This document shows, piece by piece, positions 1 through 23,056 of a stretch of DNA of 23,056 bases (its first letter is position 1; every line of letters starts with the position of its first letter). Under the pieces are notes generated by a model that saw nothing but the letters and a program-made list of their open reading frames with translations, was not told the origin of the DNA and searched no databases. Both the position numbers and the translations under genes were made by a program. This DNA comes from Paramoeba atlantica. Taxonomy: Eukaryota > Protista > Discosea. The stretch is from NCBI GenBank assembly GCA_977017575.1, contig CDRNVI010000112.1, positions 1-23,056 of the forward strand. The letters run 5' to 3'.

Positions 1-57
1 ATATCCCCTGCGCATTTTAACTCCCTCTTAAATGATAACAGCGCAGATGTTAACTCT

Positions 58-2949
58 TTACTCTTGGATTTTGAACAGGCTCTCAGCTACCGCGGCTCTG
101 ACATACACACTTGCATCTTTAAGGCGGGCGACCAGCGCGCGCACCACCAGTTCTGGCAAAGACGTTTGCTCACCTAAGGCACGAGCCGCCGGGATTCTGA
201 CGTGCTCTTCCACATCATCAAGGCGAGCGGCCAACGCGAGCACCACTGGCTCTGACAAGGACGTTTGCTTGCCCAAGGCAACAGCCGCCACGGCTCTGAC
301 CTTCCCTTTCGCACTTTCAAGGCGAGCGGCCAATGCGAGCACCACTGGCTCTGACAAGGACGTTTGCTTGTCTAAGATATGATACGCCGCGATGCCGGTG
401 TACCCTTGCCCATTTTCAGCAAGGTGAGTGAGTGCGAACACCACCCGCTCTGGCAAGGACGTTTGCTTGCTTAAGGCATCAGCCACCGCAGAGACGACGT
501 ACTCTTCCCCATGTTTAAGGCGAGCTACCAGCACGAGCAACACTGGCTCTGGCAACGATGTTTGAGCGCCTAAGGCACCAGCCATCTCGGCTATGAGATC
601 CCTATCCGCAGTATTCAGATCTGTAAGGCAAGCAGTCAGTGCTACGATAAGGGATTCGGGGAGTTCAACGTGTCGCTTGCCTAGTTCTTTAAGGAAAATG
701 ATAACCGCTCGTTGATACTCTCCCCGTTCGACTGCTGGCGGTGCTAACGCATTCAGCAACCTGCCTTCTTTCACTAGGCGTGCACTCAATGCCACACTAC
801 TTATCAGCGATTGTCTAGCTTTTTGCAGGACACTATCAGCACCATTATCATACCTCCTCGCGTAATAACCATACTTGGCGATCTGCGTAAGCTGATGATC
901 AGCATGACGCAGCCAGCGGTTGTGTCGTTCCTCAGGTAACCCAGGCTGTCCTGCGTCGGTAACATATTCTTCCAGCAGCCGAATACTCAAGCTAGCCTGT
1001 CGAAGCCCTAACACGTCATAGGGTGCTTGCTCCAACAAGTCAAAGAACCGCTTGGCGTGTTGTTCTCCTTTGTTTGCCAGTAGTCCTACCACAAACCACC
1101 ACACCACTTCATACTGCTCATCAAACTTATACCGCTGGATGAACTCGACTACGGTCGGATAAGGTGGCTGCGCTTGCCCCACTGGCCGGTACTCAGCCAA
1201 CCCCCATGGCTGAGTCCCATCACTAAACGCTTCGACAATGTGCCACGCTGCATAAAATTCTTGAAAGGTCAGGTGAAGGAAATAATAACTTGCCGGGCTG
1301 CCCTCAGTGGCCGCAATTTCTTTGAGTAAACCAATAGCTAAGATAGCTTGCAGCGATAGACGCTTCCTCTCCCGTTTTGACCAGTACTGCAGTACTTGCT
1401 CTACCTCTACTTTCGGTAATAACAAGTCCCCCGTTACCAATCCACGAATAGCCATCATGCCCAAACAACGTTGTTCTCGTTGGCATAGCGTTAATACTTC
1501 ATCATCTCTAAGTTCATCATTGACGTATGCCGCAAATTCATCACCATATTCACTTTTTAGATAAGCAATGCGCCGCTCGCACCCGCGCTGTCCAACTTCA
1601 AGATAGCGCGATAATAATCGTTGATTTAGTTGCGTATAGAGTATGGTCATGGTAATCGTGCTGGGATTAGCTTTTTGCCATAGGCTGTCATGCTGCCATA
1701 CATAACAGATAAGCGCTAACTGAATCGGTATATGCGCAATTCCCCACACCGCACGATTCGCTTGCAAGTGCTGAGTTAACGCATGGCCTTTTTTAACTTC
1801 TGCTGCACTTTCACTTTTAAAATAGCACGTAATGTATTTCGGAATATTCTTATCAATAAACCCCATGACTTCGAGCTCGCGGTCAACTTTTTCTCCAGCA
1901 CAGTCTTGCCGGAAATTTTGCATGTGATGCGGGCGTGAGGTCACTATCCACCGTGCTTTGCCAGTCAACTCTGCAAACAAATTCCATACCGGGTGGCGCT
2001 GACAACTGTCATACATGGAATCTGCTCTGGATAAATTCGCTATCTCATCATACCCATCAAGGATATAGAGAATGTGCGTTGCTTCATCTACCAATGCTGC
2101 TACGTCTTCAGCGTTGATGCGACGCCGTTTCGCTATCTGTTGGAATCCAGCCCGTTCCCACACAAAGTCCCCCAGCGTTGGGGTATTGCCACGGGCACGT
2201 ATCTGTTTAGCATAGCCTGCCAATTCTCGTAATGATATTCCGATGACCGCAGTAAATTGATTAACGGGGTCATTTTGCCATGGCGCGTCAGTTGCCCATT
2301 GATGGCATAGATAACGACACAACGTACTCTTGCCAATCCCCGCACGGCCTAGTACCAATAACCGATGAATGGGTTTATTGGGCTCATCAGCTGTCCGCCG
2401 TTGTTTGGGCGCGTCTGTTGCTGGCTTCCGTTCAATTGGCTTAAATAATTCTGCTGGCGTAATCGTTTCAGTGTGTTTTACATTATGCAAGCTCTCATAC
2501 GTGTGTAAGCGTGCATCATGTATCGATGAACCATCTGCTTTTGGTTTATCTTCTGAAGAAGCTTCTTTTTCTAACTTATTCGCTTTCTCTAATTGTTCCT
2601 TTTCTAATTTTGGTGCCACTTTCTGGATAATGCTCAAGTTGATATAGCACTCGGCTAATGAGGTTTCCCCTTTGTCAAACAAGCGGGGCAATGTCGACTG
2701 GGACTTGGTTTGGTAATAATCTCGAAACACATCAGCTAACTTTGCTTTGTTTTGTTTTATATTAATCTGAACTAGCTTTTCTCTTGCCTGGTAAAGCAAG
2801 TCTTCAGGGATAGTTTCCCCTTTTAGTTTAATAATTAATTTCGAAATGTGAACAACCCCTACCTGTGAAAGCACGAGATTACCGGCTAACGCTCGTGCAA
2901 TGGTTGTTGCATTTACATCGCCGCTTACCTGTGCACCAGACTCAACCAC
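58..2949 (-). CDS. NACHT-family STAND NTPase (NLR-like) with C-terminal HEAT-like repeats; main uninterrupted ORF, 963 aa, probably the 3' part of a longer gene
   Basis: Walker A GRAGIGKST (2323-2349), Walker B ILYILDGYDE (~2045-2074), WIVTSRP sensor motif, HIPIQLALIC motif, winged-helix motif FLHLTFQEFYAA (~1250-1285), then 33-aa helical repeats. The annotated start is a GTG inside a frame that stays open upstream to 3021. Confidence 0.9.
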   Translation of the reverse strand: MVESGAQVSGDVNATTIARALAGNLVLSQVGVVHISKLIIKLKGETIPEDLLYQAREKLVQINIKQNKAKLADVFRDYYQTKSQSTLPRLFDKGETSLAECYINLSIIQKVAPKLEKEQLEKANKLEKEASSEDKPKADGSSIHDARLHTYESLHNVKHTETITPAELFKPIERKPATDAPKQRRTADEPNKPIHRLLVLGRAGIGKSTLCRYLCHQWATDAPWQNDPVNQFTAVIGISLRELAGYAKQIRARGNTPTLGDFVWERAGFQQIAKRRRINAEDVAALVDEATHILYILDGYDEIANLSRADSMYDSCQRHPVWNLFAELTGKARWIVTSRPHHMQNFRQDCAGEKVDRELEVMGFIDKNIPKYITCYFKSESAAEVKKGHALTQHLQANRAVWGIAHIPIQLALICYVWQHDSLWQKANPSTITMTILYTQLNQRLLSRYLEVGQRGCERRIAYLKSEYGDEFAAYVNDELRDDEVLTLCQREQRCLGMMAIRGLVTGDLLLPKVEVEQVLQYWSKRERKRLSLQAILAIGLLKEIAATEGSPASYYFLHLTFQEFYAAWHIVEAFSDGTQPWGLAEYRPVGQAQPPYPTVVEFIQRYKFDEQYEVVWWFVVGLLANKGEQHAKRFFDLLEQAPYDVLGLRQASLSIRLLEEYVTDAGQPGLPEERHNRWLRHADHQLTQIAKYGYYARRYDNGADSVLQKARQSLISSVALSARLVKEGRLLNALAPPAVERGEYQRAVIIFLKELGKRHVELPESLIVALTACLTDLNTADRDLIAEMAGALGAQTSLPEPVLLVLVARLKHGEEYVVSAVADALSKQTSLPERVVFALTHLAENGQGYTGIAAYHILDKQTSLSEPVVLALAARLESAKGKVRAVAAVALGKQTSLSEPVVLALAARLDDVEEHVRIPAARALGEQTSLPELVVRALVARLKDASVYVRAAVAESLFKIQE
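76..570 (-). repeat. Five tandem 99-bp (33-aa) HEAT/PBS-lyase-like coding repeats, plus a degenerate sixth copy upstream
   Basis: Units begin GAQTSLPE, SKQTSLPE, DKQTSLSE, GKQTSLSE and GEQTSLPE, 33 aa apart. Bases 218-271 and 317-370 are identical at 53 of 54 nt. Confidence 0.9.
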
Positions 2950-3665
2950 GTTAATGTTGACGACAACATTACCCTCTGCATCTGATGCTTCTACTTCTGG
3001 AATGAGCTCGGGATCTCTTCCTCATGCTTCTCCACAGATAAATACACGTGATCACTAGACGACAAGCTACTGCTGGATGAGTTGCTAAAAGAAGCGGCAG
3101 CAGGGTAATAGCCCCGCTGCCGTTCCGAATGAATTGATGTTGGATTTGAGTGGCTTATGGACTGCCTGATGGTTGTATTACCGCTGCTTCCTGTTGCTGC
3201 TGCAACTTTGGGGAAGTATTTTCTTCCTCATTTCCAGGCACATCTATTTCTTCTTCCTTTTCCCACTCTTTAGAGCCATGACTGCCACCGACGTCCAAAG
3301 GAAGAGTATTCGGAGAAGGTGGAGAGAACATACCTTGAGAAGATGCAGCTTGTGCTAGAGAAGGAGCGGCTGATGGCACGTGAGTGAATTTAAATCCTTG
3401 AGCCTGTGCCTCCCTCGTTATTACTTCAACATCTTTACCGACTTTGCCACCCTCAGTTACAACAGTTGTATGTATATCAACGTTTGCCTTCGGCAACTTG
3501 CTTGCCTCTTTCTCATATTTTGTCTGTTCTTGTAGCCCAATTGCATACAAAGCACCCCGCTTCCTGCGGATTTACGAAATCTAGGTTAAACTCAGCCCCT
3601 GCTGCAGCCCTCCCATGCTCGGTGACAACCCTAACACTTCCGCCTATTATCAGTTTTTGCAGGTT
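2950..3665 (-). CDS. Probable N-terminal continuation of the NACHT-HEAT gene, broken by three single-base slips and cut off at the junction; includes track ORF 3155..3550
   Basis: Three one-base corrections (+1 at G3 3010-3012, +1 at T3 3207-3209, -1 at C4 3555-3558) give one open frame NLQKLIIGGSVRVVTEHG...NPQEAGALYAIGLQEQ...TSPKVAAATGSSGN...VEKHEEEIPELIPEVEASDAEGNVVVNINVVESG. The first in-frame stop upstream is at 3666-3668, at the composition switch. Slip positions are inferred. Confidence 0.6.
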
Positions 3666-3674
3666 CTAAAGGTT
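3661..3674. other. Junction between GC-balanced bacterial-like DNA and AT-rich mitochondrial DNA
   Basis: Abrupt composition change. AGGTT-CTAA-AGGTT direct repeat at 3661-3665 and 3670-3674. Reading frames on both sides end here. Confidence 0.85.
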
Positions 3675-3863
3675 TTTTGATAAATTAGCTATAAATAAAA
3701 TAAATGGTGTATTTGAAGAAATGGTTTTAGAAAGTAAAAAATTATTTTGATTACCTTTTTTTCAATTTTAAATGATGTAATTCATCCTGATAAAGTTGGT
3801 CTAAATTATAACTTTTTAGAAAGTTTTTTAGGCTCTTATAATAAATGATGTATTAATATTTAA
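3670..3863 (+). CDS. 3' remnant of an unidentified mitochondrial protein gene (5' part lost at the junction)
   Basis: With UGA=Trp and +1 T at the T7 run 3756-3762 it reads RFFDKLAINKINGVFEEMVLESKKLFWLPFFSILNDVIHPDKVGLNYNFLESFLGSYNKWCINI*. It stops 5 nt before the cox2 ATG, the tight spacing seen elsewhere in this genome. Confidence 0.5.
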
Positions 3864-3868
3864 AAAAA

Positions 3869-4889
3869 ATGATTAATTTTGTAAATAATATAATTTTTTC
3901 AAATTTAGAGGCAGATTATGCTTTACCTGGACAATTAGGTTTTCAATACCCAGCTAATACTATAGCTCGAGGAATTATTGATTTGCATAATCATATTATG
4001 TTTTTTTTAGTTTTTATTGTTGTATTTACTTTTGCTATGATTTATTTCACTTTAAGTACATTTACAATAAATAATAATAGTAATTTAGAGATTTTTAATA
4101 AAGTAAAAAATTTTTATAATGTAAGAATTTCGCATAATACATTATTAGAAACTCTTTGAATTATAATACCAAGTTTAATATTAATATCTATAGCAATACC
4201 GTCTTTTGCTTTATTATATGCTATGGAAATATCTGGTGTAAGTCTGTTAACAATGAAAGTTACAGGACATCAGTGATATTGATCTTATTCTTTTGTATTT
4301 AGTTTAGATAATCCTCAAAATTGTATATGATATTGCGAGTAATACAAATATAGAGTTAGGAGGTTCTTTTTCAAATAATATAGCTGAATTTAGTTTCGAT
4401 AGTTATATGGTACCTACTAATGAATTATCAGATAAAGGTTTACGTTTATTAGAAACTACAAATCCAGTAGTATTGCCTGTAGATACTTTTATAAAAGTAT
4501 ATGTAACAGCTAGTGATGTATTACATTGTTGAGCTGTCCCTTCATTAGGTATAAAAATAGATGCTTGTCCTGGTAGGTTAAATCAGGTAAATTTATTTAT
4601 AGATAGAATTGGTCATTTTTATGGTCAATGTAGTGAATTATGTGGTGTAAATCATGGTTTTATGCCTATTGAAATATATAGTATAACTAAATTAGATTAT
4701 ATTACATATTTATGTTTAGCTTGTGAAGATTTTAGAAATAATTCGTTTAATCAACTAATAAATTATTATCATTATTTTTATGAAGATGGAAGTAATGCTA
4801 TTGTTTTTACTAGAGGTTTCTATGATTGATGACAAGATCAACTTAATTTATCAATAAAAGAATTTTTAAATAAAGAAAATAGTATATAA
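3869..4889 (+). CDS. cox2: Cytochrome c oxidase subunit 2 (UGA=Trp; one frameshift near 4317-4320)
   Basis: [32 protein letters not shown] and the CuA motif [16 protein letters not shown]. The frame changes between 4308 and 4340 and is restored by removing one A from the A4 run. Confidence 0.95.
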
Positions 4890-4892
4890 AAT

Positions 4893-5761
4893 ATGATTAA
4901 TAAATTTAAACATTTTCATTTTTGACATATTGTAACAATTAGTCCATGACCTTTATTATTATCTATGTTTGCATTATCAATGCCAGTAGGTTTAGTAACT
5001 TTTTTTCAAGGATTTTATTATGGTGTACCTGTATTTTTTATAGGTTTAATTATGGTAATATTTATTATATGTTTATGATTTAGAGATATAGTAATTGAAG
5101 CAAGTTATGAAGGTCATCATACTAAACAAGTTCAATCAAGCTTAATTATAAGCTTTTTACTTTTTATTTTTTCAGAAGTAATGCTTTTTGTAGCTTTTTT
5201 CTGAGCTTTTTTTCATTCAAGTATTTTTCCTACAGTAGAATTAAATTGTAGTTGACCTCCCGTAGGAATGAGTGAAATAATTATGGATCCTTTGGTATTC
5301 CTTTATTAAATACTTTATTATTATTAACATCAGGTGCTACTTTAACTTTAGCACATTTATATTTAAAACAAGGATATATGGATAAATGTTTATTAACTAT
5401 GGTTGTTACAATTGTATTTGCTGTATTATTTTTATCTTTTCAGTTTTATGAATATAGTGTTTCTGCTTTTGATATTTCAGATGGTGTTTATGGTTCAACT
5501 TTTTTTTGTTGTACTGGTTTACATGGTTTTCACGTTATTGTTGGTACTATAGCTTTAAGTATGACTACTTATCGTATATATTTATCACATTTTTCACGTA
5601 ATCACCATTTAGGTTTTGAATTTGCAGCTTGATATTGACATTTTGTTGATGTAGTATGATTATTTTTATATATGATTATATATTGTTGAGGTAGTGATAT
5701 GGTAGCTCCTCTTATATTAGAATTAAAAGATGGAAAAGAGAATATTTTTTATTTAGTATAA
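4893..5761 (+). CDS. cox3: Cytochrome c oxidase subunit 3 (UGA=Trp; one frameshift at 5291-5293)
   Basis: HIVTISPWP, FSEVMLFVAFFWAFFH, DP(F)GIPLLNT after adding one T, GLHGFHV, AAWYWHFVDVVW. Confidence 0.95.
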
Positions 5762-5768
5762 ATTTACA

Positions 5769-7430
<1,662 letters not shown>

Positions 7431-7446
7431 TAATTTTACTAATATA

Positions 7447-7520
7447 ATCCCTCTGGTCTAATTGGTTAAGACATATCACTCATAATGGTACTGATATAGG
7501 TTCAAGTCCTATGGGGGATA
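7447..7520 (+). tRNA. trnI: tRNA with CAU anticodon, most likely tRNA-Ile(CAU), lysidine type
   Basis: Full cloverleaf with loop CUCAUAA. C4:G69, C5:G68 and U6:G67 are shared with the tRNA-Ile(GAU) here. Acceptor stem fully paired. Ile versus elongator Met is an inference. Confidence 0.8.
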
Positions 7521-7521
7521 A

Positions 7522-7593
7522 ATAGTTGTAGTGTAGTGGTTAACATATTAGTCTTCAAAACTAATGACATAGGTTCAAATCCTATCAACTGTG
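7522..7593 (+). tRNA. trnW: tRNA-Trp(UCA)
   Basis: Cloverleaf, anticodon TCA at 7555-7557, G73; matches UGA use at conserved Trp sites. Confidence 0.95.
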
Positions 7594-7625
7594 TTAATTA
7601 TAGATGATATAATTAAATATAATAA

Positions 7626-7697
7626 AATAGGGTGACTGAAAGGTAAAGTATTGTTTTTTGGCAGCAAATCGTGTAGGTTCGAGTCCTACTCCTAAGT
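7626..7697 (+). tRNA. trnQ: tRNA-Gln(UUG), mismatches at 1:72 and 2:71
   Basis: Anticodon TTG 7658-7660; T arm GTAGG-TTCGAGT-CCTAC; acceptor AATAGGG/TCCTAAG. Confidence 0.9.
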
Positions 7698-7710
7698 ATT
7701 AAAATTTTTT

Positions 7711-7783
7711 TTAAGGATAGTATAAATGGTTATTATAATTGATTGCAAATCTATAGATATCGGTTCGAGTCCGTTTCCTAACT
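7711..7783 (+). tRNA. trnC: tRNA-Cys(GCA), mismatches at 1:72 and 3:70
   Basis: Anticodon GCA 7745-7747; U73; acceptor TTAAGGA/TCCTAAC. Confidence 0.9.
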
Positions 7784-7810
7784 TTTTTAAATTTAATATA
7801 AATATAATAA

Positions 7811-7883
7811 ATACCTATAGTTTAATTGGTTAAAACATGCATTTGATAAGTGCAAATTGATAGTTCGAGTCTATCTGGGGTTA
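7811..7883 (+). tRNA. trnI: tRNA-Ile(GAU), mismatches at 2:71 and 3:70
   Basis: Anticodon GAT 7845-7847; acceptor ATACCTA/TGGGGTT. Confidence 0.93.
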
Positions 7884-7892
7884 TAAATAAAA

Positions 7893-7965
7893 AAATAGTT
7901 AGCTCAATTGGTAGAGCATCGGCCTTTTAAGCTGAGGGTTATAGGTTCGAGCCCTATACTATCTA
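7893..7965 (+). tRNA. trnK: tRNA-Lys(UUU), mismatch at 2:71
   Basis: Anticodon TTT in loop CTTTTAA 7924-7930; acceptor AAATAGT/ACTATCT. Confidence 0.95.
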
Positions 7966-7971
7966 TAAAAA

Positions 7972-8044
7972 TATGGAATGGTGTAATAGGTTAGCACATC
8001 GAGTTGTGATTTCGATAGTATGAGTTCAAGTCTCATTTCTTACC
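7972..8044 (+). tRNA. trnH: tRNA-His(GUG), mismatches at pairs 1, 2 and 3; G-1 not encoded
   Basis: Anticodon GTG 8006-8008; C73; acceptor TATGGAA/TTCTTAC; base -1 (7971) is A. Confidence 0.92.
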
Positions 8045-8110
8045 TAAATTAAGAATAATAAAATTAATAAAATATATATTTTATTAAAATTTTTTTATTA
8101 ATTTGTAAAG

Positions 8111-8184
8111 ATAGATGTGATGGAATTGGTAGACATATTAGTTTTAGGCACTAAATTTTAGGGGTTCGAGTCCCCTCATCTGTA
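8111..8184 (+). tRNA. trnL: tRNA-Leu(UAG) with a short 5-nt variable region
   Basis: Leu-type D arm ATGGAATTGGTAGACAT; anticodon TAG 8145-8147; A73; variable region ATTTT 8155-8159. Confidence 0.9.
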
Positions 8185-8218
8185 TTGTATGTATAAAAAA
8201 AGAAAAAATATTTTTTAT

Positions 8219-8289
8219 AAGGATGTAGTTTAAAGGTAAAATATCTATTTTGGGTGTAGACGTTATAGGTTCAAATCCTATCGTCCTGA
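8219..8289 (+). tRNA. trnP: tRNA-Pro(UGG), mismatch at 1:72
   Basis: Anticodon TGG 8251-8253; acceptor AAGGATG/CGTCCTG; A73. Confidence 0.95.
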
Positions 8290-8302
8290 TAATTATAATA
8301 AC

Positions 8303-8376
8303 AAGGAGGTAGCTTAATAGGCTAAAGCTTTAACCTGTCGAGTTAAAAGATGAGGGTTCGAATCCCTTCCTCCGCA
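8303..8376 (+). tRNA. trnD: tRNA-Asp(GUC), mismatches at 1:72 and 2:71
   Basis: Anticodon GTC 8337-8339; acceptor AAGGAGG/CCTCCGC; discriminator A. Confidence 0.93.
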
Positions 8377-8676
8377 TAAAATATAATAAAATATGTTTAT
8401 TTTATTACTATATAATCAAGATGTTTTGTATATAAAATATAAAATATTATCTATTATATCTATTATATCAATTTATGATAAATGTACATTTACCATATGA
8501 AATAACAGTCATAAAACATACATATTTTACTTAAAATTTTTTTAAAAAGAGAAAAAATTATAAAATAAATAATTATAGTAATTTAAAAGATTTTATTTTT
8601 TTAATAAAATAAAAAATTAGTAAATTAATATGATTATTTATTTTAGATATATCTTACTTTAATAATATATGATTTA

Positions 8677-8748
8677 TTTTTCTTCGTCTAATGGTTAGGA
8701 CATTGCTCTTTCACAGCAGAAATAAGGGTTCAAATCCCTTAGAAATGA
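8677..8748 (+). tRNA. trnE: tRNA-Glu(UUC), mismatch at 2:71
   Basis: Anticodon TTC 8710-8712; acceptor TTTTTCT/AGAAATG. Confidence 0.93.
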
Positions 8749-8849
8749 AATTATTTTATCCGTATTAATTTAATTTAATAAAATTTTTTTGTAAATTTTT
8801 GAAATCTATTATACACTGATTTAAGTATATTATTTGTCACATATAATAA

Positions 8850-8868
8850 GGGGGGTTTGGGGGGTTTG
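8850..8868 (+). repeat. (GGGGGGTTT)x2+G tract between two AT-rich hairpins; possible control element
   Basis: G6-T3-G6-T3-G is the only such intergenic G-tract I found in the AT-rich segment. The function is not shown by the sequence. Confidence 0.6.
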
Positions 8869-8922
8869 TATAAGAGATAATATTTTATTTTCATATACAA
8901 AAATTTTTATTAATTATTTTTT

Positions 8923-9005
8923 AATGGTGTGATGGAATTGGTAAACATGATAGACTTAAAATCTATTGCCTTTTAGGCTTGAGGGTTCGAGTCCCTCCTC
9001 CAATA
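8923..9005 (+). tRNA. trnL: tRNA-Leu(UAA) with long variable arm; mismatches at 2:71 and 6:67
   Basis: Anticodon TAA 8957-8959; variable arm TGCCTTTTAGGCTT; acceptor AATGGTG/CTCCAAT. Confidence 0.93.
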
Positions 9006-9023
9006 ACGATGAGTTAATTATTT

Positions 9024-9096
9024 TTTAAGATGGAGTAATAGGTTAACTCAGTGGTCTCATGAGCCACAGATGTAGGTTCGAGTCCTACTCTTCTTA
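9024..9096 (+). tRNA. trnM: Initiator-type tRNA-Met(CAU), mismatches at pairs 1, 2 and 3
   Basis: D stem GAGT/ACTC (A11:U24, initiator-type); loop CTCATGA; acceptor TTTAAGA/TCTTCTT. Confidence 0.9.
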
Positions 9097-9120
9097 TATA
9101 ATTACGTAAATATTATTATG

Positions 9121-9142
9121 GATTACATTTGAATATGTAATC
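9121..9142. repeat. 8-bp inverted repeat (hairpin) upstream of atp9
   Basis: GATTACAT-ttgaat-ATGTAATC. Confidence 0.5.
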
Positions 9143-9195
9143 AATTTTGAATTTTTATTAATTAGTAAAATATATGTATAAAAATATTTTCGAAA

Positions 9196-9435
9196 ATGGC
9201 AGGACAAGAAATTATGTTAATTTTTGCAAAAAAAGTAGGTGCTGGTTTAGCTACTATAGGTTTAGCAGGTGCTGGAGTAGGTATAGGAATAGTTTTTGGA
9301 GCTTTTTTAATTGCTTATTCACGTAATACTACAATTAAAAACGATTTATTTGGTTATACTTTATTAGGTTTCGCATTAACAGAAGCAATTGCTCTGTTTG
9401 CCCTAATGATGGCTTTCTTAATCTTATATACTTAA
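9196..9435 (+). CDS. atp9: ATP synthase subunit c (subunit 9), 79 aa
   Basis: [21 protein letters not shown] glycine zipper and [11 protein letters not shown] with the proton-binding Glu. Confidence 0.97.
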
Positions 9436-9462
9436 TCAACCTATTTTTGTTGTTTTGTATTT

Positions 9463-9536
9463 AATTGGTTAGTTTAATTGGTTAAAATTATGATCTTCTA
9501 AATCATTAGATATAGGTTCGAGTCCTATACCAATTA
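9463..9536 (+). tRNA. trnR: tRNA-Arg(UCU)
   Basis: Anticodon TCT 9497-9499; fully paired acceptor AATTGGT/ACCAATT. Confidence 0.95.
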
Positions 9537-9544
9537 TAATTTTT

Positions 9545-9625
9545 TATAGTGTGGCTGAGCGGTAAAGCGGTAGACTGTAAATCTATTGTATTTATACATC
9601 GTAGGTTCGAATCCTACCACTTCCA
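9545..9625 (+). tRNA. trnY: tRNA-Tyr(GUA) with long variable arm; mismatches at pairs 1, 2 and 3
   Basis: Anticodon GTA 9577-9579; acceptor TATAGTG/CACTTCC; A73. Confidence 0.95.
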
Positions 9626-9682
9626 TTTGATTAAAATATATAATAATGTTGAATAATTTTTAAACAAATCATTTTAAAATTT

Positions 9683-10682
9683 TTTTATAAATTTAAAATA
9701 GTATTAAACGGATATCTTGCCAATAATAAGTTTATAGACGTTTTAAAACGTAATGTGAAAGTAAAATAATAATAATTTTTCAATATTCACGTATCTAAAG
9801 GGAAAACCCAATTAAATTAAATAATTAAAGAATATCTAATGAATTGAATCATCTTAGTAATTAGTTAAAAAAAATAAAAATGATATTATTAGTAGTGGCG
9901 AGCGAAAATAAAATAGCTAAATTAAACAATAATATAAATAAAAAATATAATAATTTGGAATAATTAACAAAATAAGTAATAGTCTTGTTATTTTTTATTA
10001 TTATTATTGGTTTTGAGTAAAATAAAAACTAAATTTGTTTGAAGATTAGAGTACCATCTCTAAAGGCTAAAGAATTATTATTGAGCGATAGTGAAAAAGT
10101 ACTGTGAAGGAAAGATGAAAAGAAATTTTTTAAAAATGTTGAAATAGATTTTGAAATTTAATACTAAATAGCACTTTAAGCATAAATAATTATATGTTAA
10201 AAGGTACCTTTTGCATAATGGGTCAGTGAGTTAATTATTGTAGCAAAATAAAAAATTATTAAATTTTTTAATTGTAATTAATATATTTATAGTTATAATA
10301 ATTAGACCCGAAACCAAGTGATCTAGTCATGGGCAGATTGAAGTTAATTAAATATTAATGGAGGATCGAACCCGTTTATGTTGCAATATATTGGGATGAC
10401 CTATGATTAGGGGTGAAAGGCTAATCAAACTTGGAGATAGCTGGTTTTCTACGAAATCTATTTAAGTAGAGATGAAATTTAAATTTATATAAGGTAGAGC
10501 TACCATATTGGGTTGTTGAATCCATATGAACTTCAAATAAATATAAAGTAAAAATTTTAATTTCGATATATGGCGAAAAGGTTGTATATCAAGAGGGAAA
10601 GAGCCCAGATTATAAATTAAGGTTTCTAAATTAATATTAAGTTAAAAAGTATATTATAATATTAACAATGAATAGGAGGTAG

Positions 10683-10716
<34 letters not shown>

Positions 10717-12465
10717 CAGCTCACTATTGATAGATATTTATATACAAAAATATAACGAAAATAAATATTATACCGAAATTATAAAATATTATTTAAAATA
10801 ATAATATTGGTAGTAGAACGTTTTATAAAAGAAAAAAAAAATTGTTAAATTATAAAATTAAAATTGAATATACTGGCATAAGTAGCAAAAATAATGTTAT
10901 AAACATTATCATCTAAAAATCTAAGGTTTCTAATGTCAAGATAAACTGCATTAGGTTAATCGGTCCCTAAAATGAATATGATAGTAATAATTGAAGGGTA
11001 GTTAAAGAGTTATAAGGATAACATAATATTTTTAACGTTATTAGTAGATGACAGTTTATTTTTTAAATATTTTAGGATCAAATTTTAATAAATATAGTAA
11101 AACATTGTGTGATATATTCGAATATATTGATTGAAATATTTAAAAAATAAATTCAAGAAAGAATACTAATATATAAAACCGTACTAAATCCTACACAGGA
11201 GGATTAGTAGAGAATACTAAGATGAATAATTGAATAATATCGAAGGAACTCGGCAAATTAACTCTGTAACTTCGGGAGAAAGAGTATTTTTATATATACA
11301 TTATATGTATATAAAAATGTAACAGAATAGAGGATGGCGACTGTTTAACAAAAACACAGGACTTTGCAAAATTAATTAATGATGTATAAGGTCTGACACC
11401 TGCCCGGTGCTATAAAGGTAATTGTTATTGTTAATATATTATTTAATGTATTAGCTTTATATAGAATGAATAGTAAACGGCAGCTGTAAATATAACGGTT
11501 CGAAGGTAGCGAAATTCCTTGTCGAGTAAGTTTCGACCTTGCATGAATGGTGTAACGACTATCCTACTGTCTCCGGTATTATATTAGCGAAATTGAATTC
11601 TCTGTGCAGATGCAGCGTATTAATAGCTAGACGGAAAGACCCTATGCACCTTTACTGCAGTTATATTTTGTTATTAAAAATTAAATTTATAGGATACAAA
11701 CTAATCGTTTTAAAATTTTAATATTAGTTAATTGTTTAGATAATCTTGGAATAGTTTGAATTTAATTTTTAAAACTTAATAATTTTTTATTGACAGAATA
11801 TATTTGGTAGTTTCTCTGGGGCGGAGACCTCATAAAATGTAACTGAGGTGTACAAAGGTAATTAAAATTTTATTAGAAAATTTTGGCGTGTAATGGCTAA
11901 AAATTACTTAACTGTGAGATTTACAAATCAAACAGAGATCTTTTTTATTAAAAAGGTCGGTCATAGTGATCCAATATAATTGAATGGAAAATATATTGCT
12001 CAACGGATAAAAGGTACGCTAGGGATAACAGGCTTATGACTCCGGAGAGAAGATATCGACGGGGTTGTTTGGCACCTCGATGTCGATTGGTCACATCCTG
12101 GTTAAGAAAAATGTTCCAAGGGTAAGGCTGTTCGCCTTTTAAAGTGGCACCTGAATTGGGTTCAGAACGTCGTGAGACAGTTCGGTTCCTATCTACTATT
12201 AATTAATTAAAATTGAAGGAATCTTATCTTAGTACGAAAGGACTGGAGAAGGAATATCACTGGTAAATCGGTTGTAATTATAATTGCATAGTCGAGTAGC
12301 TAAATATTAATAATATAATTATTGAATTCAATCAGATATAAGAAGATTATCCTAAAATATTTTAAAAGTATTGATTGTAAAAGATTATTACGAAATTAAG
12401 TTATGTGTGTAAGTCCTGTGAAGGATTGAGCTAAATAATTTTAAGAATCAATCTAATTTATAAAA
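9683..12465 (+). rRNA. rnl: Mitochondrial large-subunit rRNA (23S-like), no intron evident
   Basis: Conserved blocks GACCCGAAACCAAGTGATCT, GGAACTCGGCAAA, GTAGCGAAATTCCTTGTC, GGATAACAGGCT, GGCACCTCGATGTCG, CGTCGTGAGACAGTT, CTTAGTACGAAAGGAC. Ends inferred from pairing of 9683-9693 with 12455-12465. Confidence 0.95.
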
Positions 12466-12550
12466 AGAAAAAAGAAAAAAGAAAAAAAATTTCTATATAA
12501 GAAAAAATAAAATATATAATATTTTGAAAATATTATATGTAATAAAACAA

Positions 12551-12571
12551 CAAACTTTAAATTAAAGTTTG
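12551..12571. repeat. Perfect 10-bp inverted repeat between rnl and trnN
   Basis: CAAACTTTAA-a-TTAAAGTTTG. Confidence 0.5.
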
Positions 12572-12586
12572 TAATTTGTAAAACAA

Positions 12587-12659
12587 TACTTGGTAGTTTC
12601 AATGGTAAAATAATTGGCTGTTAACCAATCAGATGTAGGTTCGAATCCTGCCCAGGTCG
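12587..12659 (+). tRNA. trnN: tRNA-Asn(GUU), mismatch at 1:72
   Basis: Anticodon GTT 12620-12622; G73; acceptor TACTTGG/CCAGGTC. Confidence 0.95.
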
Positions 12660-12673
12660 TTGTATAAAAATAA

Positions 12674-12762
12674 GTTTATGTGGCTGAGTGGTTTAAAGTA
12701 ATCCTCTTGAAAAGGATCGTATAATTTTAATTATACCGTGGGTTCGAATCCCACCATAATCT
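12674..12762 (+). tRNA. trnS: tRNA-Ser(UGA) with long variable arm; mismatch at 2:71
   Basis: Anticodon TGA 12708-12710; acceptor GTTTATG/CATAATC. Confidence 0.93.
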
Positions 12763-12824
12763 TAATATAAAAAAAAAGGAAAAAATTTATGTAAATTATA
12801 TAATATATAATATATTATATATAA

Positions 12825-14358
12825 ATACTTGTATGTTTTATTCTGGCTTTGAGTAAATGCTAGTAGTTCGCTTAACACATGCTAGTCAATTAAAATTTAA
12901 AATTTAAAATTAATGGCGTAAGGGTGAGTAATATATAAAAACGGGACTTATAATTATGTTTATATTATAAACTGGTTTATAAAGATTTAGGTAGTTGGAG
13001 GTGTAATAGACTAACAAGCCGATAATTCTTAGTTGATCTTAGAAGGAGGTACAACCACATTGGGAATGAGAAAAGGCCCAAGTTCCATTAGGAGGCAGCA
13101 GTGAGGAATATTGAACAATGAGCGAAAGCTTGATTCAGCGAAACTACCTGAATTATGACAATTTATTGAAAAATTCTTGTTTAAGTGAGCATAATGAGGT
13201 TAAACTTAAGAATAAGCATCGACTAACTTCGTGCCAGCAGTCGCGGTGATACGGAGGATGCGGGTGTTACTCAGCATTACTGGGCGTAAAGCGTATGATA
13301 AGTGGTTTATTTTTTAATAATATAATTTTAAAGGCGTTATTAGTAATAATGAATAAATTATATATTAGTAAACTAAGAGTATTATTCAGATATATAGTAT
13401 TCATAGAGGAAAGGTGAAATTTTATGATACTATGGAGACTATCAGAAGGTGAAAGCTATATATTAGATTTATACTGACACTAAAGTACGAAGGTATGGGT
13501 ATCAAAGAGGATTAGAGACCCTTGTAGTCCATACAGACAACGATGGATGCTAACTGTAGGAAATATTTTTGTGGTTTAGCTAACGCGTAAGCATCCCGCC
13601 TGGGGAGTATGATCGCAAGATTTGAACTCAAAGAAAGTGGCTGAGATTTGGTACGAACGGTGGAACATGTGGTTTAATCTGATATAACGCATAAAATCTT
13701 ACCAATTCTAGATTGAAAAAAATTATAATAAATATAGTAAACTTTATATAATTTTTTTAAGCAGGTGTCGCATGGCTGTCGTCAGCTCGTGTAGTGATAT
13801 GTATGGTTAGGTCCTGTAACGAGTGTAATCCTTACAATATAATAAAATATATGATATATTATTATATTATTATATGTTATATTATTATATGTTATATTAT
13901 TATATTTTATTATATTGTATTATTAATTATATATTAAATGAAATAGAGGAGGACGTCAAGTAGGTATGGCCCTGATGAATTGGACTACACACGTGTTACA
14001 AAAATAATTACAAAAAAAAAATAAATTGTGAAATTTATTTAAATTATAAAGATTATTATAGTTCGGATTATTTTTTGAAAATAAAAATATGAAGTTGAAA
14101 TCGTCAGTAATCGAAAATTAGAATGTTTCGGTGAAATGGGATCCAAATCTAGTACACACTGCCCGTCACGCCAAGAAAGTTGTTAATATTGGAAAAATTA
14201 TAATTAATAATTTATATTTATTAATTATTTTTAATCTATTGGAGATAATTAATTTTTAATAAAATATTATTAATTATTTAATTTGAATGTATTGATAGTA
14301 ATCAGGGTGAAGTCGTAACATGGTAGTGGTAGGGGAACCTGCCGCTGGATGGAAAATA
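12825..14358 (+). rRNA. rns: Mitochondrial small-subunit rRNA (16S-like)
   Basis: TTAACACATGC, GGAGGCAGCAGTGAGGAATATTG, GTGCCAGCAGTCGCGGT, GATTAGAGACCC, CATGGCTGTCGTCAGCTCGTG, GTACACACTGCCCGTC, GAAGTCGTAACATGGTA. No anti-Shine-Dalgarno at the 3' end. Ends approximate. Confidence 0.96.
13866..13910 (+). repeat. Three tandem copies of a 15-mer inside an SSU rRNA expansion
   Basis: ATTATTATATGTTAT x2, then ATTATTATATTTTAT. Confidence 0.8.
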
Positions 14359-14359
14359 A

Positions 14360-14465
14360 ATTTATATTTTTTTAAAGGTAAGCTTATCGAACCCCTTTAA
14401 AATATTATATATTAAATTATATTCTCGTAAAAATTTTTTATAAGAGTGTATAATTTATATTAATA
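14360..14465 (+). rRNA. Candidate divergent AT-rich mitochondrial 5S rRNA
   Basis: Hairpin ATATT(TTT)TTAAAGG/CCTTTAAAATAT closes a loop ending in CGAAC (5S loop C motif). A second hairpin AAATTATA...GAGTG-TATAATTT follows. About 105 nt, directly after rns. Helix I is not clearly identified. Confidence 0.5.
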
Positions 14466-14479
14466 CAAATCATATTTTA

Positions 14480-14568
14480 GGTGAGTTGACCGAGTGGTTG
14501 AAGGTGTCGATCTGCTAAATCGATATATTATTCATATAATATCATGGGTTCGAATCCCATACTTACCT
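14480..14568 (+). tRNA. trnS: tRNA-Ser(GCU) with long variable arm
   Basis: Anticodon GCT 14514-14516; fully paired acceptor GGTGAGT/ACTTACC. Confidence 0.95.
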
Positions 14569-14601
14569 TATAAAAAAATAATTTGTAATTAAAAAAAGTT
14601 T

Positions 14602-14674
14602 TTGGGGGTAGCTCAGTAGGTAGAGCGAAAGCCTGAAAAGCTTTAGGTCATTGGTTCAAACCCAATTCTCCACA
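14602..14674 (+). tRNA. trnF: tRNA-Phe(GAA), mismatch at 1:72
   Basis: Anticodon GAA 14635-14637; acceptor TTGGGGG/TCTCCAC. Confidence 0.95.
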
Positions 14675-14791
14675 TAAAACTTATATTAAATTTAATTATA
14701 TATGGAATCATTAAAAAGAAAAAGAAAGAAAATTAAAAAAATAGAAAAAGTTTAAAAAAATAGAAAAATTAAGGAAAGAAATAATACAAAT

Positions 14792-15373
14792 ATGTTTGAA
14801 AAAAAAGAAAGTTTAATAAAAAATAGAAAAATTAAATTAATAAAAATTAATAGATTTAAATTACCTTCAGTTACTTGATTATATAAAAAAAGGTTTAATA
14901 TAAAATTAAAAAGCAAGTATATATATGCAGCAAAATTATCTTTTTTTAAAAAAAGATATTTATTTATTAATATACTAAAAAATTTTTTAAAGGGTTCAAA
15001 ATTAGATTGGTTATCTTTGAAATTTTGTACTATTAATTTAATATTAAAATTTAGAAAAAATACTTATTTAAATTTTTCGCATATTAATGGTAATGTAATA
15101 AAAAATTTTTCATGTGGTTTTTATTATAAAAAATCATTAAAAAAAACATATTTTGCTTTAAATTCATTAATTGTAGCTTCAAAAATTGATTTTAAATATT
15201 TATATATGAAAAAATGATTCATATTAAATATAATTTATAAATATTATACTCGTAAAATTTTGAGAAATTTAAAAGAATTATTTGAGACTACACCTTATAA
15301 TTTAAAATTTATTAATTTTATAAAATCAAAAGCTCATAATGGTATAAGAAAGAAAAAGAGAAGAAGAAAATAA
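14792..15373 (+). CDS. rps11: Ribosomal protein S11 with basic N-terminal extension (193 aa; might start at ATG 14702)
   Basis: S11 core FRKNTYLNFSHINGNVIKNFSCG and C-terminal KAHNGIRKKKRRRK*. The frame is open from 14756 to 15373 with UGA=Trp. Confidence 0.8.
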
Positions 15374-15376
15374 TAA

Positions 15377-15700
15377 ATGAAAAAGAAAAAAATTATAAAT
15401 TATTTAGATAATTCTTTTTTAAGTTTATTATCTATAGAATATAAAAAAAAATTAAATAATAATATATCTATTGAATTAAAGTATTTTTATTGATTATATA
15501 AGAATGTATATATACGTAATATTAAAGGATTAATTATAAATTTTAATAAAAAACAATATTTAAATATGGAAAGTTTTTTATTATATTATAGGTATAAAAA
15601 TATACGATTAAATCAATTATATTTTGTTACTTCACCTTTTAATCTATTTTTAAAATATAAAATTAGTAATATTAAAAAATATAAATTATATATATTATAA
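15377..15700 (+). CDS. Unidentified K/Y/N-rich ORF (~107 aa, UGA=Trp), possibly a very divergent ribosomal protein such as S10
   Basis: ATG 3 nt after the rps11 stop and stop 12 nt before nad9, filling the gap in a compact genome. Only weak S10-like features (ISIELKYF..., LYFVTSPF). Confidence 0.55.
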
Positions 15701-15712
15701 ATAAAAAAAAAT

Positions 15713-16303
15713 ATGTTATTAAAAAAAAATAGTAATAATTATGCTGTAAATTATATATTAAATTTACTAATTAAATATATTTCGCATATAAAAATAACAG
15801 ATGAATTTATTAAAATTAAATTAGTATCAAAAGATTATTTAGGTTTTGTTTTAAATATTTTTAATAAGCATACTTTTTTAAGATATAAGGTAATAACTGA
15901 TATTTGCTGTAGTGATTTTATTGATAGAGCTAAACGTTTTGAAATTGATTATAATTTATTAAGTATAGATTATAATTCTAGATTAATTATTTCTGTATCT
16001 TGTGATAAATTAGATGTTATAAGATCTATTACTGATATTTATTTAGGTGCCGATTGGTTAGAACGTGAAGTTTGAGATATGTATGGTATTTTTTTCATGG
16101 GTCATAAAGATTTAAGACGTATATTAACCGATTATGGTTTTGAAGGTTATCCGTTTCGTAAAGATTTTCCTTTAAATGGTTATTTAGAAATAAGGTATGA
16201 TGAAGATAAACAATATTTGATTTATGAGCCTATTGAATTAATGCAAAATATGAGATCATATAGTTTTACTAATCCTTTATTAAATAAAAAATATATACTT
16301 TAA
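15713..16303 (+). CDS. nad9: NADH dehydrogenase subunit 9 (196 aa)
   Basis: [58 protein letters not shown]. The two track ORFs are joined by UGA=Trp at 16073. Confidence 0.96.
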
Positions 16304-16307
16304 AAAC

Positions 16308-17492
16308 GTGAATAAAATATTTAAAAAAATAAAAACTTTTACAATTAATTTTGGACCACAGCATCCAGCAGCTCATGGAGTTTTAAGATTAATATTAGAA
16401 TTAAATGGTGAAATTATAGAAAGAGCTGATCCTCATATAGGATTATTACATAGAGGTACTGAAAAATTAATAGAATATAAGACTTTTATACAAGCTTTAC
16501 CTTATTTTGATAGATTAGATTATGTATCTATGATGGCTCAAGAACATTGTTATTCATTAGCTGTAGAAACTTTAAGTTCTACTAATGTACCTATAAGAGC
16601 AAAGATGATACGTATGATTTTTGGTGAAATAACTAGAATATTAAATCATATTTTAGGGTTAACTACACATGCGTTAGATGTTGGAGCGATGACACCTTTT
16701 TTATGACTTTTTGAAGAACGTGAAAAATTAATGGAATTTTACGAAAGGGTATCAGGTGCTAGAATGCATGCAGCATATATAAGACCAGGAGGTATTAGTC
16801 AAGATATACCTATGTCTTTTTGTGATGATTTATATAAATTTACACAAAATTTTATTAACTCTTTAATGGAAATGGAAGAATTATTAAATAGAAATAGAAT
16901 ATGAAAGCAACGTTTAGTTGATGTAGGTATATTAGATTATAATCAAGCACAAACTTGAGGTTGTAGTGGAGTTATTTTAAGAGGATCTGGTATTCCTTGA
17001 GATATTAGAAAAAGTGAACCTTATGAATTATATAATGAAGTTGATTTTAAATCTTATATAGGAAATAAAGGTGATTGTTTTGATAGATTTTTAATTAGAT
17101 TAAAAGAAATGCATGAGAGTTTAAAAATAATTTTACAACTTTTAAATAATTTAAAAGAAGGTCCTATTTCAAATTACAATAATAAATTAACTATACCTTC
17201 AAGATCATTAATGAAGTTTTCTATGGAATCTTTAATACATCATTTTAAATTATTTACAGAAGGTGTTAATATACCTTTTAATGATGTTTATAGATCTATA
17301 GAAGCTCCTAAAGGGGAATTTGGTGTTTTTTTAGTTTCGGGAGGATTAAATAGACCGGTAAGATGTAAGATAAAAGCACCAGGGTTTAATCATTTACAAT
17401 TATTAGATACATTATCAAAAGGACATATGATAGCCGACGTTGTTACTATTATAGGTACTTTAGATATAGTTTTTGGGGAGGTTGATCGTTAA
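16308..17492 (+). CDS. nad7: NADH dehydrogenase subunit 7 (394 aa), GTG start
   Basis: [66 protein letters not shown]; one frame with UGA=Trp. Confidence 0.97.
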
Positions 17493-17525
17493 TCAAATAT
17501 TAATATAATATTAAATATTATATAT

Positions 17526-17981
17526 ATGCAAAAAAAATTAAATCGATTTTTTAATTTAAGAATTAATTCTAGAGGTGCCGCTTTTGAAAATTTAAATATA
17601 GGACCTAATTTAAGTCCTTATATGAATAGAGAGAAAATCAAAGAATTTTGTAATGAATTTAATAAACAAACTTTTATATATAGATCGGAAGATTTATTAA
17701 TATATGTTAGATTATTTTTATATACTGATAAATCATTTGTTTTTTTAATAAAAGGACCTTCTTTTAGTACTTTATTAAAATTGGTTTGAAATATTATGAG
17801 TTTAACTAATAAAAATATTATGGAAAATTCAATTACATTAAGAAGTCTATATGATATTGTTATATTGCGTAATTATTATTGATTTAAATTATATAATAAT
17901 TTAAATCAAAATTGAATAAAATTGCGATTTAAAAATAGTTTTTTTTCTATATCAAATTTACAAATTAATAAAATTATATAA
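17526..17981 (+). CDS. rpl11: Ribosomal protein L11 (151 aa)
   Basis: IGPNLSPY, IKEFCNEFNKQT, DKSFVFLIKGPS; position ahead of the S12 cluster. Confidence 0.85.
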
Positions 17982-17987
17982 AAAAAT

Positions 17988-18368
17988 ATGAATAATAATA
18001 TTATAGCTTTTTTTTATGTAAATCAATATAAATCGTTTAATAATTTTGAACAAATTTATTTAAACATAATGAATTTATCTAATATTAATTTATTATATAA
18101 AATTTTTGTTAATATTAAATATTTTCTAATTATTAATAAGAAATATTTTAAAGATTATTTTACTAATCTTTTAAATAATGATGAATTATTATTTTTATGA
18201 TATAAAAATAAATTATATAGTAAAGGAACTTTAGAACAAATAAATAATAGTTTGTTATTAAATTTAAATAAAAAGTATTATTTATTTAATGAATTAATGA
18301 AATTCAATTATGAAAAAAAAATTATTAATACGTTAATAATATTTAAATATAAATTATGGCTTCGTTAA
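17988..18368 (+). CDS. 126-aa ORF, probably a divergent ribosomal protein L10
   Basis: Open frame with UGA=Trp at 18198. It lies between rpl11 and rps12, the ancestral position of rpl10. The N-terminal IIAFFYVNQY is compatible with L10, but similarity is weak. Confidence 0.5.
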
Positions 18369-18765
18369 ATCAATTAATAAGAAATAAAGGCAGAGTAAAA
18401 AAAAAAGACGTACAAAAGTTCTTTTGTTAGATTCTTGTCCACAAAAAAGAGGTGTTTGTATTGAAATTAGAAATAGTGTTAGTCCAAAGAAACCAAATTC
18501 CGCTAAAAGAAAAGTAGCAAAAATAAGGTTATCAACAGGTAAAAAATTAATAGCAGTTATACCAGGTCAAGGTCATAATTTACAAAAATATTCAGTTGTT
18601 ATGATTAGAGGAGGACGTGCTAGAGATATTCCAGGTGTACGTTATAAATTGATAAAAGGAAAATATGATTTTAGTAATTGAGAACGTGAAGAACGAAATA
18701 AAAGTCGTTCTAAATATGGTTTGAAAAAAAAAAAGAAGGAAGGAAAGATTTTAAAAGATGAATAA
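18356..18765 (+). CDS. rps12: Ribosomal protein S12 (one frameshift in A10 run 18397-18406)
   Basis: [61 protein letters not shown]. Confidence 0.95.
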
Positions 18766-19153
18766 TTGAATAAAATATTTAATACAATTATTAATAAGAA
18801 AAGGAAAAAAACAACGAATTATATTAAGTTTAGAGAAAATTTTTATTAATATAAAAAAAATATATGGTTGTTTAAATACTTTTTTTAAACAAATAGAAAC
18901 TAATATATTCATTAGAATGTTTTGTTATATTAAAAAAGTAGGAGGTAAAAAATTATTAATACCACATATTTTAAAATCAAAAGATTCTATACCATATTCT
19001 GTTAAATTAATAGTTAGATCTATTAATTCTAGAACTGAGCGAAAATTTCAAGAACGTATTCAAAATGAATTAATAGATGTATATAATAATAAAGGTTTAT
19101 CTATAAAAAAAAAAAATGATATGTATAGATTAATAGAAAGCAAATTATACTAA
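18758..19153 (+). CDS. rps7: Ribosomal protein S7 (may end at 19178 if one A at 19137-19139 is spurious)
   Basis: LLIRKGKK, KKVGGKKLLIP, IQNELIDVYNNKGLSIKKKND. Removing one A gives a more S7-like C-terminus IEANYTNIRFKRKK*. Confidence 0.88.
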
Positions 19154-19181
19154 TATTAGATTTAAAAGAAAAAAATAATAT

Positions 19182-19924
19182 ATGTTAAAAAGAAAAAACA
19201 GTCAAAAACAATAAAATATTTAACATTTGGTTTAAAAAATTATGCAGGAGTTAATAATATGGGTCATAAAACAGTTAAATCAAAGGGAACTAGAGTTAAA
19301 AAGAAATATAGATTAATTGATTTTTTTAGAACTTACGTTGATATACCTGCAATGGTATTAAGAATTGAGTATGATCCTAATAGATCTGCAAATATAGCTT
19401 TAATATGTTATAAAAATGGATTTTTATCTTATATTTTAGCAGCCGAAGGTTTGAAAGAAGGTATGGTTTTAAATTCAGTAGATAAAATTGTTGGTTCTAC
19501 ATATCCTTTAGTAAATATAAAATTTGGTTCTTTTATATCTTGTATGGAATTAAAAAAAAAAAAAGGAAGTAAAGTAGCTAGATCTGCAGGTTCTTTTTGT
19601 TTATTAATATCACAAATAAATGAAAATTATTATTTAATAAGATTTCCTTCTGGTTTAGAAAAATTAATTTTTAAATATAATAAAGCTATGATAGGTATTG
19701 TATCAAATAGAGGGCATAATTTAATAAAAAAAGGTAAAGCGGGTGTTAATATAAGATTAGGTAAAAAATCAACAGTTAGAGGTGTAGCAAAAAATTGTGT
19801 AGATCACCCTAATGGTGGTGGTAGAGGTAAAACTTCTCCATGAGTCGATTGTCCAAATTTTACAAGACGTGTATTAAAATTTGTACCTACAACTAAGAAA
19901 AAAAAAAAAAATGAATTTAAATAA
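19182..19924 (+). CDS. rpl2: Ribosomal protein L2 (frameshift in A6 run 19193-19198)
   Basis: AGVNNMGH, IEYDPNRSANIAL, VARSAGS, TVRGVAKNCVDHPNGGGRGKT. Confidence 0.95.
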
Positions 19925-20189
19925 TATTAAAAATATTAAAAATATTATTTATTTTTTAAATTTTTCAAAAATAGATAAATTTATTTGATTAAAGTTAAAA
20001 GTAAAAGGTTTTAAAATAAAAAATTATATGATTAATAAAAGATTAACTGTATATAATGGTCGTTATTTTATTCCAATTAAAATTATAGATAGTATGGTTA
20101 ATTATATGATTAATTATTTTTTTTTTTCAAAAAATATATTAATAAAAGATAAAAAGAAAAAGAAACGTATAAAGAAAAAGAAAAAATAA
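19911..20189 (+). CDS. rps19: Ribosomal protein S19, divergent (92 aa)
   Basis: LTVYNGRYFIPIKIIDSMV matches the S19 motif V(H/Y)NG..F.P..I...MV; lies between rpl2 and rps3. Confidence 0.8.
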
Positions 20190-20191
20190 TT

Positions 20192-21384: not shown

Positions 21385-21432
21385 AAAGAAAGAAAAGAGA
21401 AAAAAAGTTGATTTATTAAGAAATAAATAGAA

Positions 21433-21847
21433 ATGAAAAAAATTTTTGTCAAAAAACATTTAATATTAAATTATTCTAATACTAAAAATTCGATAGAAAA
21501 AATATATAATGGTCAATTTGCTATATATTTTTTAGAAGGTGGTATACTATATAATAATGAATTTAAGGCTTTATTATTTTTTTTAAAAAAAAGATTAAAA
21601 TTTTTTACTAAATTATTTATACGTTTTCATCCAAGTTTTAAAAAATACATCAAAACCTATAGGTGTTAGAATGGGTAAAGGTAAGGGTGCATTAAATGAA
21701 TATTATTTTAATATATCAAAAGGTCAAATATTTATTGAATTTGGTTTTTCTAATAAATTATTTATATTAAATGATAATGATAAAAAAAAATTATTAGAAT
21801 ATATTAAAGGAATTGTTAAATTAGCCTCATTAAAATCAAATATTTAA
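21433..21847 (+). CDS. rpl16: Ribosomal protein L16 (frameshift in A6 run 21640-21645)
   Basis: GQFAIYFLEGG, then TSKPIGVRMGKGKG after removing one A; synteny rps3-rpl16-rpl14. Confidence 0.92.
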
Positions 21848-21874
21848 ATTTAAATTAGTTTATAATAAAGAAAA

Positions 21875-22233: not shown

Positions 22234-22237
22234 AAAT

Positions 22238-22747: not shown

Positions 22748-22767
22748 TAATAATAATAATAAATTAC

Positions 22768-23037: not shown

Positions 23038-23040
23038 GTT

Positions 23041-23056
23041 ATGAATTTTTTTTGTA
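23041..23056 (+). CDS. Start of the next gene, cut by the window edge (rps8 expected from ancestral order)
   Basis: ATG 3 nt after the rps14 stop; identity from synteny only. Confidence 0.35.

Follow-up and report, generated by a model that had tools for sequence, protein, structure and literature searches.

Contig CDRNVI010000112.1, from the Paramoeba atlantica assembly GCA_977017575.1, sets a gene of bacterial type beside DNA of mitochondrial type. The question is whether two genomes have been joined in living cells, or whether the join was made in vitro or during assembly. The whole stretch, 23,056 nucleotides of the forward strand, was analysed and is referred to here as the window. Positions are those of the window unless another sequence is named. 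GC content, by region, is approximately 0.41–0.55 within 1–3500 and approximately 0.09–0.34 within 4001–23056. The switch is abrupt, with a GC content of 0.55 in the interval 3547–3646 and 0.21 in the interval 3647–3746. An earlier note on this DNA, prepared from the sequence alone, had recognized the abruptness of the switch and placed it at ~3666. A three-way alignment, with both parental sequences, puts the breakpoint at 3646/3647. Hence, the real join is ~20 nucleotides to the left.

Parental sequences of the two halves

The parent of the left-hand side was found by a word search with the NACHT open reading frame (ORF). This detected a 100% identical product, of 700 amino acids, encoded by a contig of 2,447,832 bp (ena:ERZ24900291:ctg4025c; the locus is called L001 below). 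The contig is closed and deposited as OZ220716.1, with the description 'MAG: Gammaproteobacteria bacterium ... chromosome: 1'. Window positions 1–3646 correspond to L001 12160–8516. There are no mismatches; the three differences are each of one base in a homopolymer, at window positions 2157, 3010, and 3555. Past position 3646, the bacterial contig runs on with unrelated GC-rich sequence, which is the remainder of a gene encoding 369 amino acids. The earlier note had proposed a search for the NACHT gene in uninterrupted form. The region is present in this form on the closed 2.45-Mb bacterial chromosome, which runs through the breakpoint.

The layout of L001 is compact and bacterial, with IS66 and IS4/5-type transposases and a phage lysozyme. 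Eukaryote-like Pkinase, SH3, Sel1, and MLKL_N proteins are also encoded. Judged by these predicted genes, the content of the locus looks like that of an intracellular bacterium. Note that the window begins within a mobile element. The bacterial parent has an IS4/IS5-type insertion sequence, of ~873 bp, at L001 12075–12947. Here, 20-nucleotide inverted repeats (12075–12094 and 12928–12947) flank DUF4096 and DDE_Tnp_1 ORFs. The fragment of this element in the window is at positions 1–86, on the minus strand, and window position 1 is L001 12160. The left end of the contig is, in other words, 86 nucleotides inside an insertion sequence repeat.

The parent of the right-hand side is mitochondrial DNA (mtDNA) of the amoeba. 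The window's atp9 product is on record in four contigs, two of which were used for comparison. The first, ctg3923c (39,429 bp; L002), carries the circular suffix 'c' and is from the same sample as the window. The other, ctg2721l (36,635 bp; L003 and L005), is from a second assembly. Window positions 3645–19434 match L002 4448–20240 at 99.94%, and positions 12234–23056 match L005 1–10818. The mitochondrial part is colinear with L002 and L005 at 99.9%. Since the L002 match is continued by the L005 match, colinearity with mtDNA extends to the window's final base.

All genes on the mitochondrial side are on the plus strand and, in ORFs read with code 4, TGA encodes Trp. Closest to the join is the 3' end of atp1 (codons 427–499 and the stop codon; positions 3645–3863, plus strand). 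Homopolymer deletions at 3673 and 3766 shift its reading frame in the window. The rest of the 19.4-kb colinear mtDNA half, at 3869–23056 on the plus strand, starts with cox2 (ATG at 3869), followed by cox3 and then cox1. It also includes 19 tRNAs, atp9, the rRNAs, nad9, nad7, and genes for ribosomal proteins (rpl11, rps12, rps7, rpl2, rps19, rps3, rpl16, rpl14, and rps14). Rfam locates the LSU rRNA at 9685–12465 and the SSU rRNA at 12825–14360, both on the plus strand. A plus-strand tRNA at 7522–7593 has the anticodon UCA, which fits the use of TGA for Trp. The gene set, the UGA-decoding tRNA, the rRNAs on one strand, and colinearity with a circular contig of organelle size identify the right side as a segment of a mitochondrial genome.

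The order of genes in this mtDNA is atp1-cox2-cox3-cox1, with cox1 and cox2 as separate genes, and the circle is 39.4 kb. Outside the window, at L005 12207–15686, an ORF of 1159 codons lies between the ribosomal-protein cluster and cob. No Pfam match is on record for its product.

In intact mtDNA, the breakpoint has on its left the remainder of atp1 (499 amino acids; L002 3169–4668). The earlier note had also suggested looking for a circular mtDNA with a different left neighbour at this point, and the 39.4-kb contig is such a molecule. Full-length atp1 is on record in four contigs, and the nearest named relative is that of Paramoeba pemaquidensis, at 80% identity. These records bear on the idea that bacterial DNA was taken up into a subset of mtDNA molecules, generating heteroplasmy. 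The junction itself would be an instance of such uptake, and nothing beyond it points the same way. The join destroys atp1, yet the gene is intact in the circular mtDNA and in every other recorded contig that contains it. Furthermore, the bacterial part of the window ends in an insertion sequence, with no return to mtDNA. We consider heteroplasmy of this kind scarcely credible.

With both parents identified, a nuclear origin can also be weighed. The window might be an amoeba nuclear locus, at which a very recent transfer of bacterial genes lies adjacent to a very recent insertion of mtDNA (NUMT). Both types of event are known in protist nuclei, and the window is from a mostly eukaryotic assembly. 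However, neither end of the 23-kb piece carries nuclear DNA or any other third sequence, and the left end stops within a bacterial insertion sequence. In addition, both halves are identical to their free parents save homopolymer errors. Hence, two very large insertions would both need to be extremely recent. A nuclear locus is, in our judgement, very improbable.

The join and the accuracy of the flanking sequence

The dinucleotide TA, at 3645–3646, is common to both parents. Identity with the bacterial chromosome ends at 3646 and identity with mtDNA begins at 3645, such that the parental matches overlap by these 2 nucleotides only. In a simulation of random joins between the two parents, 17% had an ambiguity of at least 2 nucleotides (P = 0.17). 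There is no target-site duplication at the join, and no end of a transposon or other mobile element. Both breakpoints are inside coding sequence: at codon 427 of mitochondrial atp1 and codon 207 of the bacterial gene for 369 amino acids. In the full-length parents, these sites are near position 1,201,950 of OZ220716.1 (L001 8516) and near position 5,605 of ctg3923c (L002 4448).

The earlier note described a direct repeat, AGGTT-CTAA-AGGTT, at the breakpoint. The string is certainly present, on the plus strand at 3661–3674, but it is inside atp1. It is native sequence that also occurs in the intact mtDNA contig, and the two AGGTT copies, in the atp1 tail, are 15–28 nucleotides to the right of the join. 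Note that 5-mers repeated with a spacing of 5–15 nucleotides occur ~65 times per kb in the AT-rich mtDNA here. We rejected AGGTT as microhomology since both copies are native mtDNA, located off the real join, and such repeats are frequent by chance. Repair by microhomology had been put forward as a route to a large mtDNA insertion; as the AGGTT repeat is not located at the breakpoint, that proposal loses its footing.

The position of the join also alters how the truncated frames are read. As the earlier note stated, a minus-strand frame is open to 3665, but its last 19 nucleotides (3647–3665) are mtDNA on the wrong strand. A plus-strand frame of mitochondrial style does open at 3670. Both genes were said to lack their 5' parts, and this is true of the two genes that meet at the join. 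The NLR gene, however, is not one of them. The start of the NACHT ORF (~3048–3066) is within the window, and it is the separate gene for 369 amino acids that is cut.

Across the length of the window, 21 sites depart from the parental sequences, or ~0.9 per kb. Three of the differences are in bacterial DNA (1–3646), nine in mtDNA between 3645 and 19434, and nine in mtDNA between 19435 and 23056. By type, 19 are one-base indels in homopolymers and 2 are G>A changes within G runs. Between the two independent mtDNA consensus contigs, there is a difference of only ~0.1 per kb. The window's copies of several genes, including cox2, cox3, rps3, rpl16, rpl14, and the tail of atp1, are frameshifted; the parental copies are intact. 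Hence, because errors of sequencing type break genes in the window only, the window is of low-depth or single-read quality. All 21 differences are of the sequencing-error type. Not every one is an error in the window since, at 2157, the NACHT ORF is whole in the window and split in the deposited chromosome. As far as can be judged from the sequence, the profile of errors would fit one or very few long reads, and not a normally covered locus. It also appears unlike the profile expected of a decaying insertion, in which substitutions would dominate.

These properties invite comparison with organelle DNA insertions made by end joining, of which NUMTs are the model. In both situations, a large stretch of near-unchanged mtDNA lies directly against non-mitochondrial DNA, with 0–2 nucleotides of homology at the junction. 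The window differs in having no second junction and no divergence of the substitution type. Recipient DNA on both flanks of the mtDNA was sought and not found, as the mtDNA continues to the window's end. Moreover, the insert is missing from the closed assembly of the bacterial chromosome that would be the recipient; the 2.45-Mb consensus has an uninterrupted gene for the 369 amino acid protein there.

Could a recombinant nevertheless have formed in vivo, confined to a minority of the cells? If so, end joining would have brought 19 kb or more of host mtDNA into chromosomal DNA of a gammaproteobacterium living inside the amoeba, with either the chromosome itself or a linear piece of it as the recipient. 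A rare event of this sort would look identical at the assembly level. The bacterial locus is also symbiont-like, with Pkinase, SH3, Sel1, and MLKL_N domains, NACHT-HEAT, and many insertion sequences. Since such features are typical of intracellular symbionts, contact with host mtDNA is conceivable. Against this, the site is uninterrupted in the closed chromosome, and there is a single junction, after which 19.4 kb of mtDNA follows without return to bacterial DNA. Microhomology at the join is not beyond chance and, where the window departs from mtDNA, the changes are of the sequencing-error type rather than substitutions. On balance, we regard a rare in vivo recombinant as improbable.

Genes of the bacterial half

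The NACHT-HEAT ORF encodes an NLR-like STAND NTPase of 963 amino acids and occupies 58–2949 on the minus strand. Pfam assigns a NACHT domain (E = 8.6e-16; residues 196–379) followed by HEAT_2 (E = 1e-9; residues 872–958). Homologues are encoded by chlamydial and Glomeribacter endosymbionts, fungi, and rotifers. Bacterial and eukaryotic NACHT proteins with HEAT/ARM repeats likewise have a NACHT NTPase domain and then the repeats. Unlike these proteins, the gene described here has its MLKL_N-like part in a separate ORF and an insertion sequence that interrupts the 3' end. A further difference is that it has no match among PADLOC models. Specifically, PADLOC defence models returned no family, at E ≤ 0.001, for either the NACHT protein or the product of the gene upstream. 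Hence, we rejected a described antiphage NACHT system.

The true start of the NACHT ORF is probably near 3048–3066 (L001 9096/9114). In the window, the homopolymer difference at 3010 places this upstream start out of frame. The ORF is not cut by the join, since it comes after a stop codon and ~90–107 nucleotides of spacer. At the opposite end, the stop codon (58–60) is within the insertion sequence, which overlaps the 3' end of the ORF. Because of this, the HEAT array may be truncated. Tandem units of ~99 nucleotides (33 amino acids), ~74% mutually identical, are found at 114–584, in the 3' end of the gene. The motif of this HEAT-like repeat array is LGxQTSL(S/P)EPVV. Position 2157 (L001 10004) is of particular relevance to the reading frame: the window has CCC and the deposited chromosome CC. 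There is one ORF of 963 codons in the window, as opposed to overlapping ORFs of 304 and 700 codons in the MAG. Either the consensus of the deposited chromosome has a homopolymer error here, or the difference reflects a genuine polymorphism or a pseudogene.

The gene interrupted by the join is directly upstream of NACHT-HEAT. It is intact at L001 7897–9006, and its 369 amino acid product has an MLKL_N-like N-terminus (Pfam MLKL_N, PF22215; E = 8.3e-7). The window has only the 3' part, comprising codons 207–369 and the stop codon (3155–3646, minus strand), and an extra C at 3555 frameshifts the fragment. A search of PDB sequences with the 369 amino acid protein gave no match. About 7 kb further upstream, L001 271–2370 encodes a protein of 699 amino acids with MLKL_N, protein kinase, and Sel1 parts. 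On the basis of its predicted domains, this would be an MLKL-like architecture in a gammaproteobacterium. It matches no PADLOC model. Fungal NLRs carry N-terminal executioner domains; an MLKL_N-like four-helix-bundle gene upstream of NACHT-HEAT recalls these. Note that likenesses to NACHT and NLR proteins carry no weight for the junction question.

Origin of the contig and its use

We conclude that the window is very likely an in vitro or assembly chimera, rather than a biological fusion or a genomic locus. The earlier note had ranked a chimeric read or misassembly first among its readings; this is borne out, with both parents found intact through the breakpoint. Indeed, because both are in the same sample, as complete circles running straight through the join, an artefact is almost certain. 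The junction must be present in at least one read, since an assembler cannot join sequences sharing 2 nucleotides only. Beyond this, we infer both that the origin was in vitro and how many molecules support the join: a single DNA molecule, or very few, would have been made during library preparation. In such a molecule, a chromosome fragment from the co-sequenced gammaproteobacterium would meet a piece of the amoeba's high-copy mtDNA at an essentially blunt join. Ligation of fragment to fragment, or template switching by a polymerase, could provide the route. The resulting read would not be mergeable into either true circle, and the assembler would then keep it as a short, poorly corrected contig.

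Chimeric reads account for 0.02–3.17% of long-read libraries, are commoner with ligation-based preparation, and can mimic DNA integration (PMC8495745). The window resembles chimeric long reads and contigs, from libraries prepared by ligation or amplification, in several ways (PMC8495745). Thus, the join is abrupt, between unrelated sequences with no meaningful homology, and both parents are intact in the same data. In addition, one partner is the most abundant molecule, mtDNA, and the sequence is of read-level quality. The difference is that this piece survived into a released assembly rather than being filtered out. From the naming style of the contigs and MAG, and from comparable genome notes only, we infer that the data originate from PacBio HiFi sequencing and metaMDBG assembly. 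A literature search did not yield a paper describing this genome.

The earlier note had added that a chimera would itself record a host-symbiont pair. This goes too far: what is recorded is the co-presence of two DNAs in one extract. A host-symbiont relationship is not proven by the chimera, because the latter shows only that the DNAs were extracted jointly. The switch in composition and both truncated genes do exist in the sequence, but that sequence is a chimeric contig of low depth, and the fusion is not a real biological feature.

The main value of these results is as a quality flag. The contig is not evidence of lateral gene transfer, of a NUMT, or of a foreign gene in mtDNA, and should be removed or split at 3646/3647. 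Were the join real, it would offer a direct and rare sight of DNA flow from organelle to symbiont in a Paramoeba-like amoeba, but the evidence points the other way. For the biology of NACHT-HEAT, the proper reference is the closed bacterial chromosome; for the mitochondrial genes, it is the complete 39.4-kb mtDNA.
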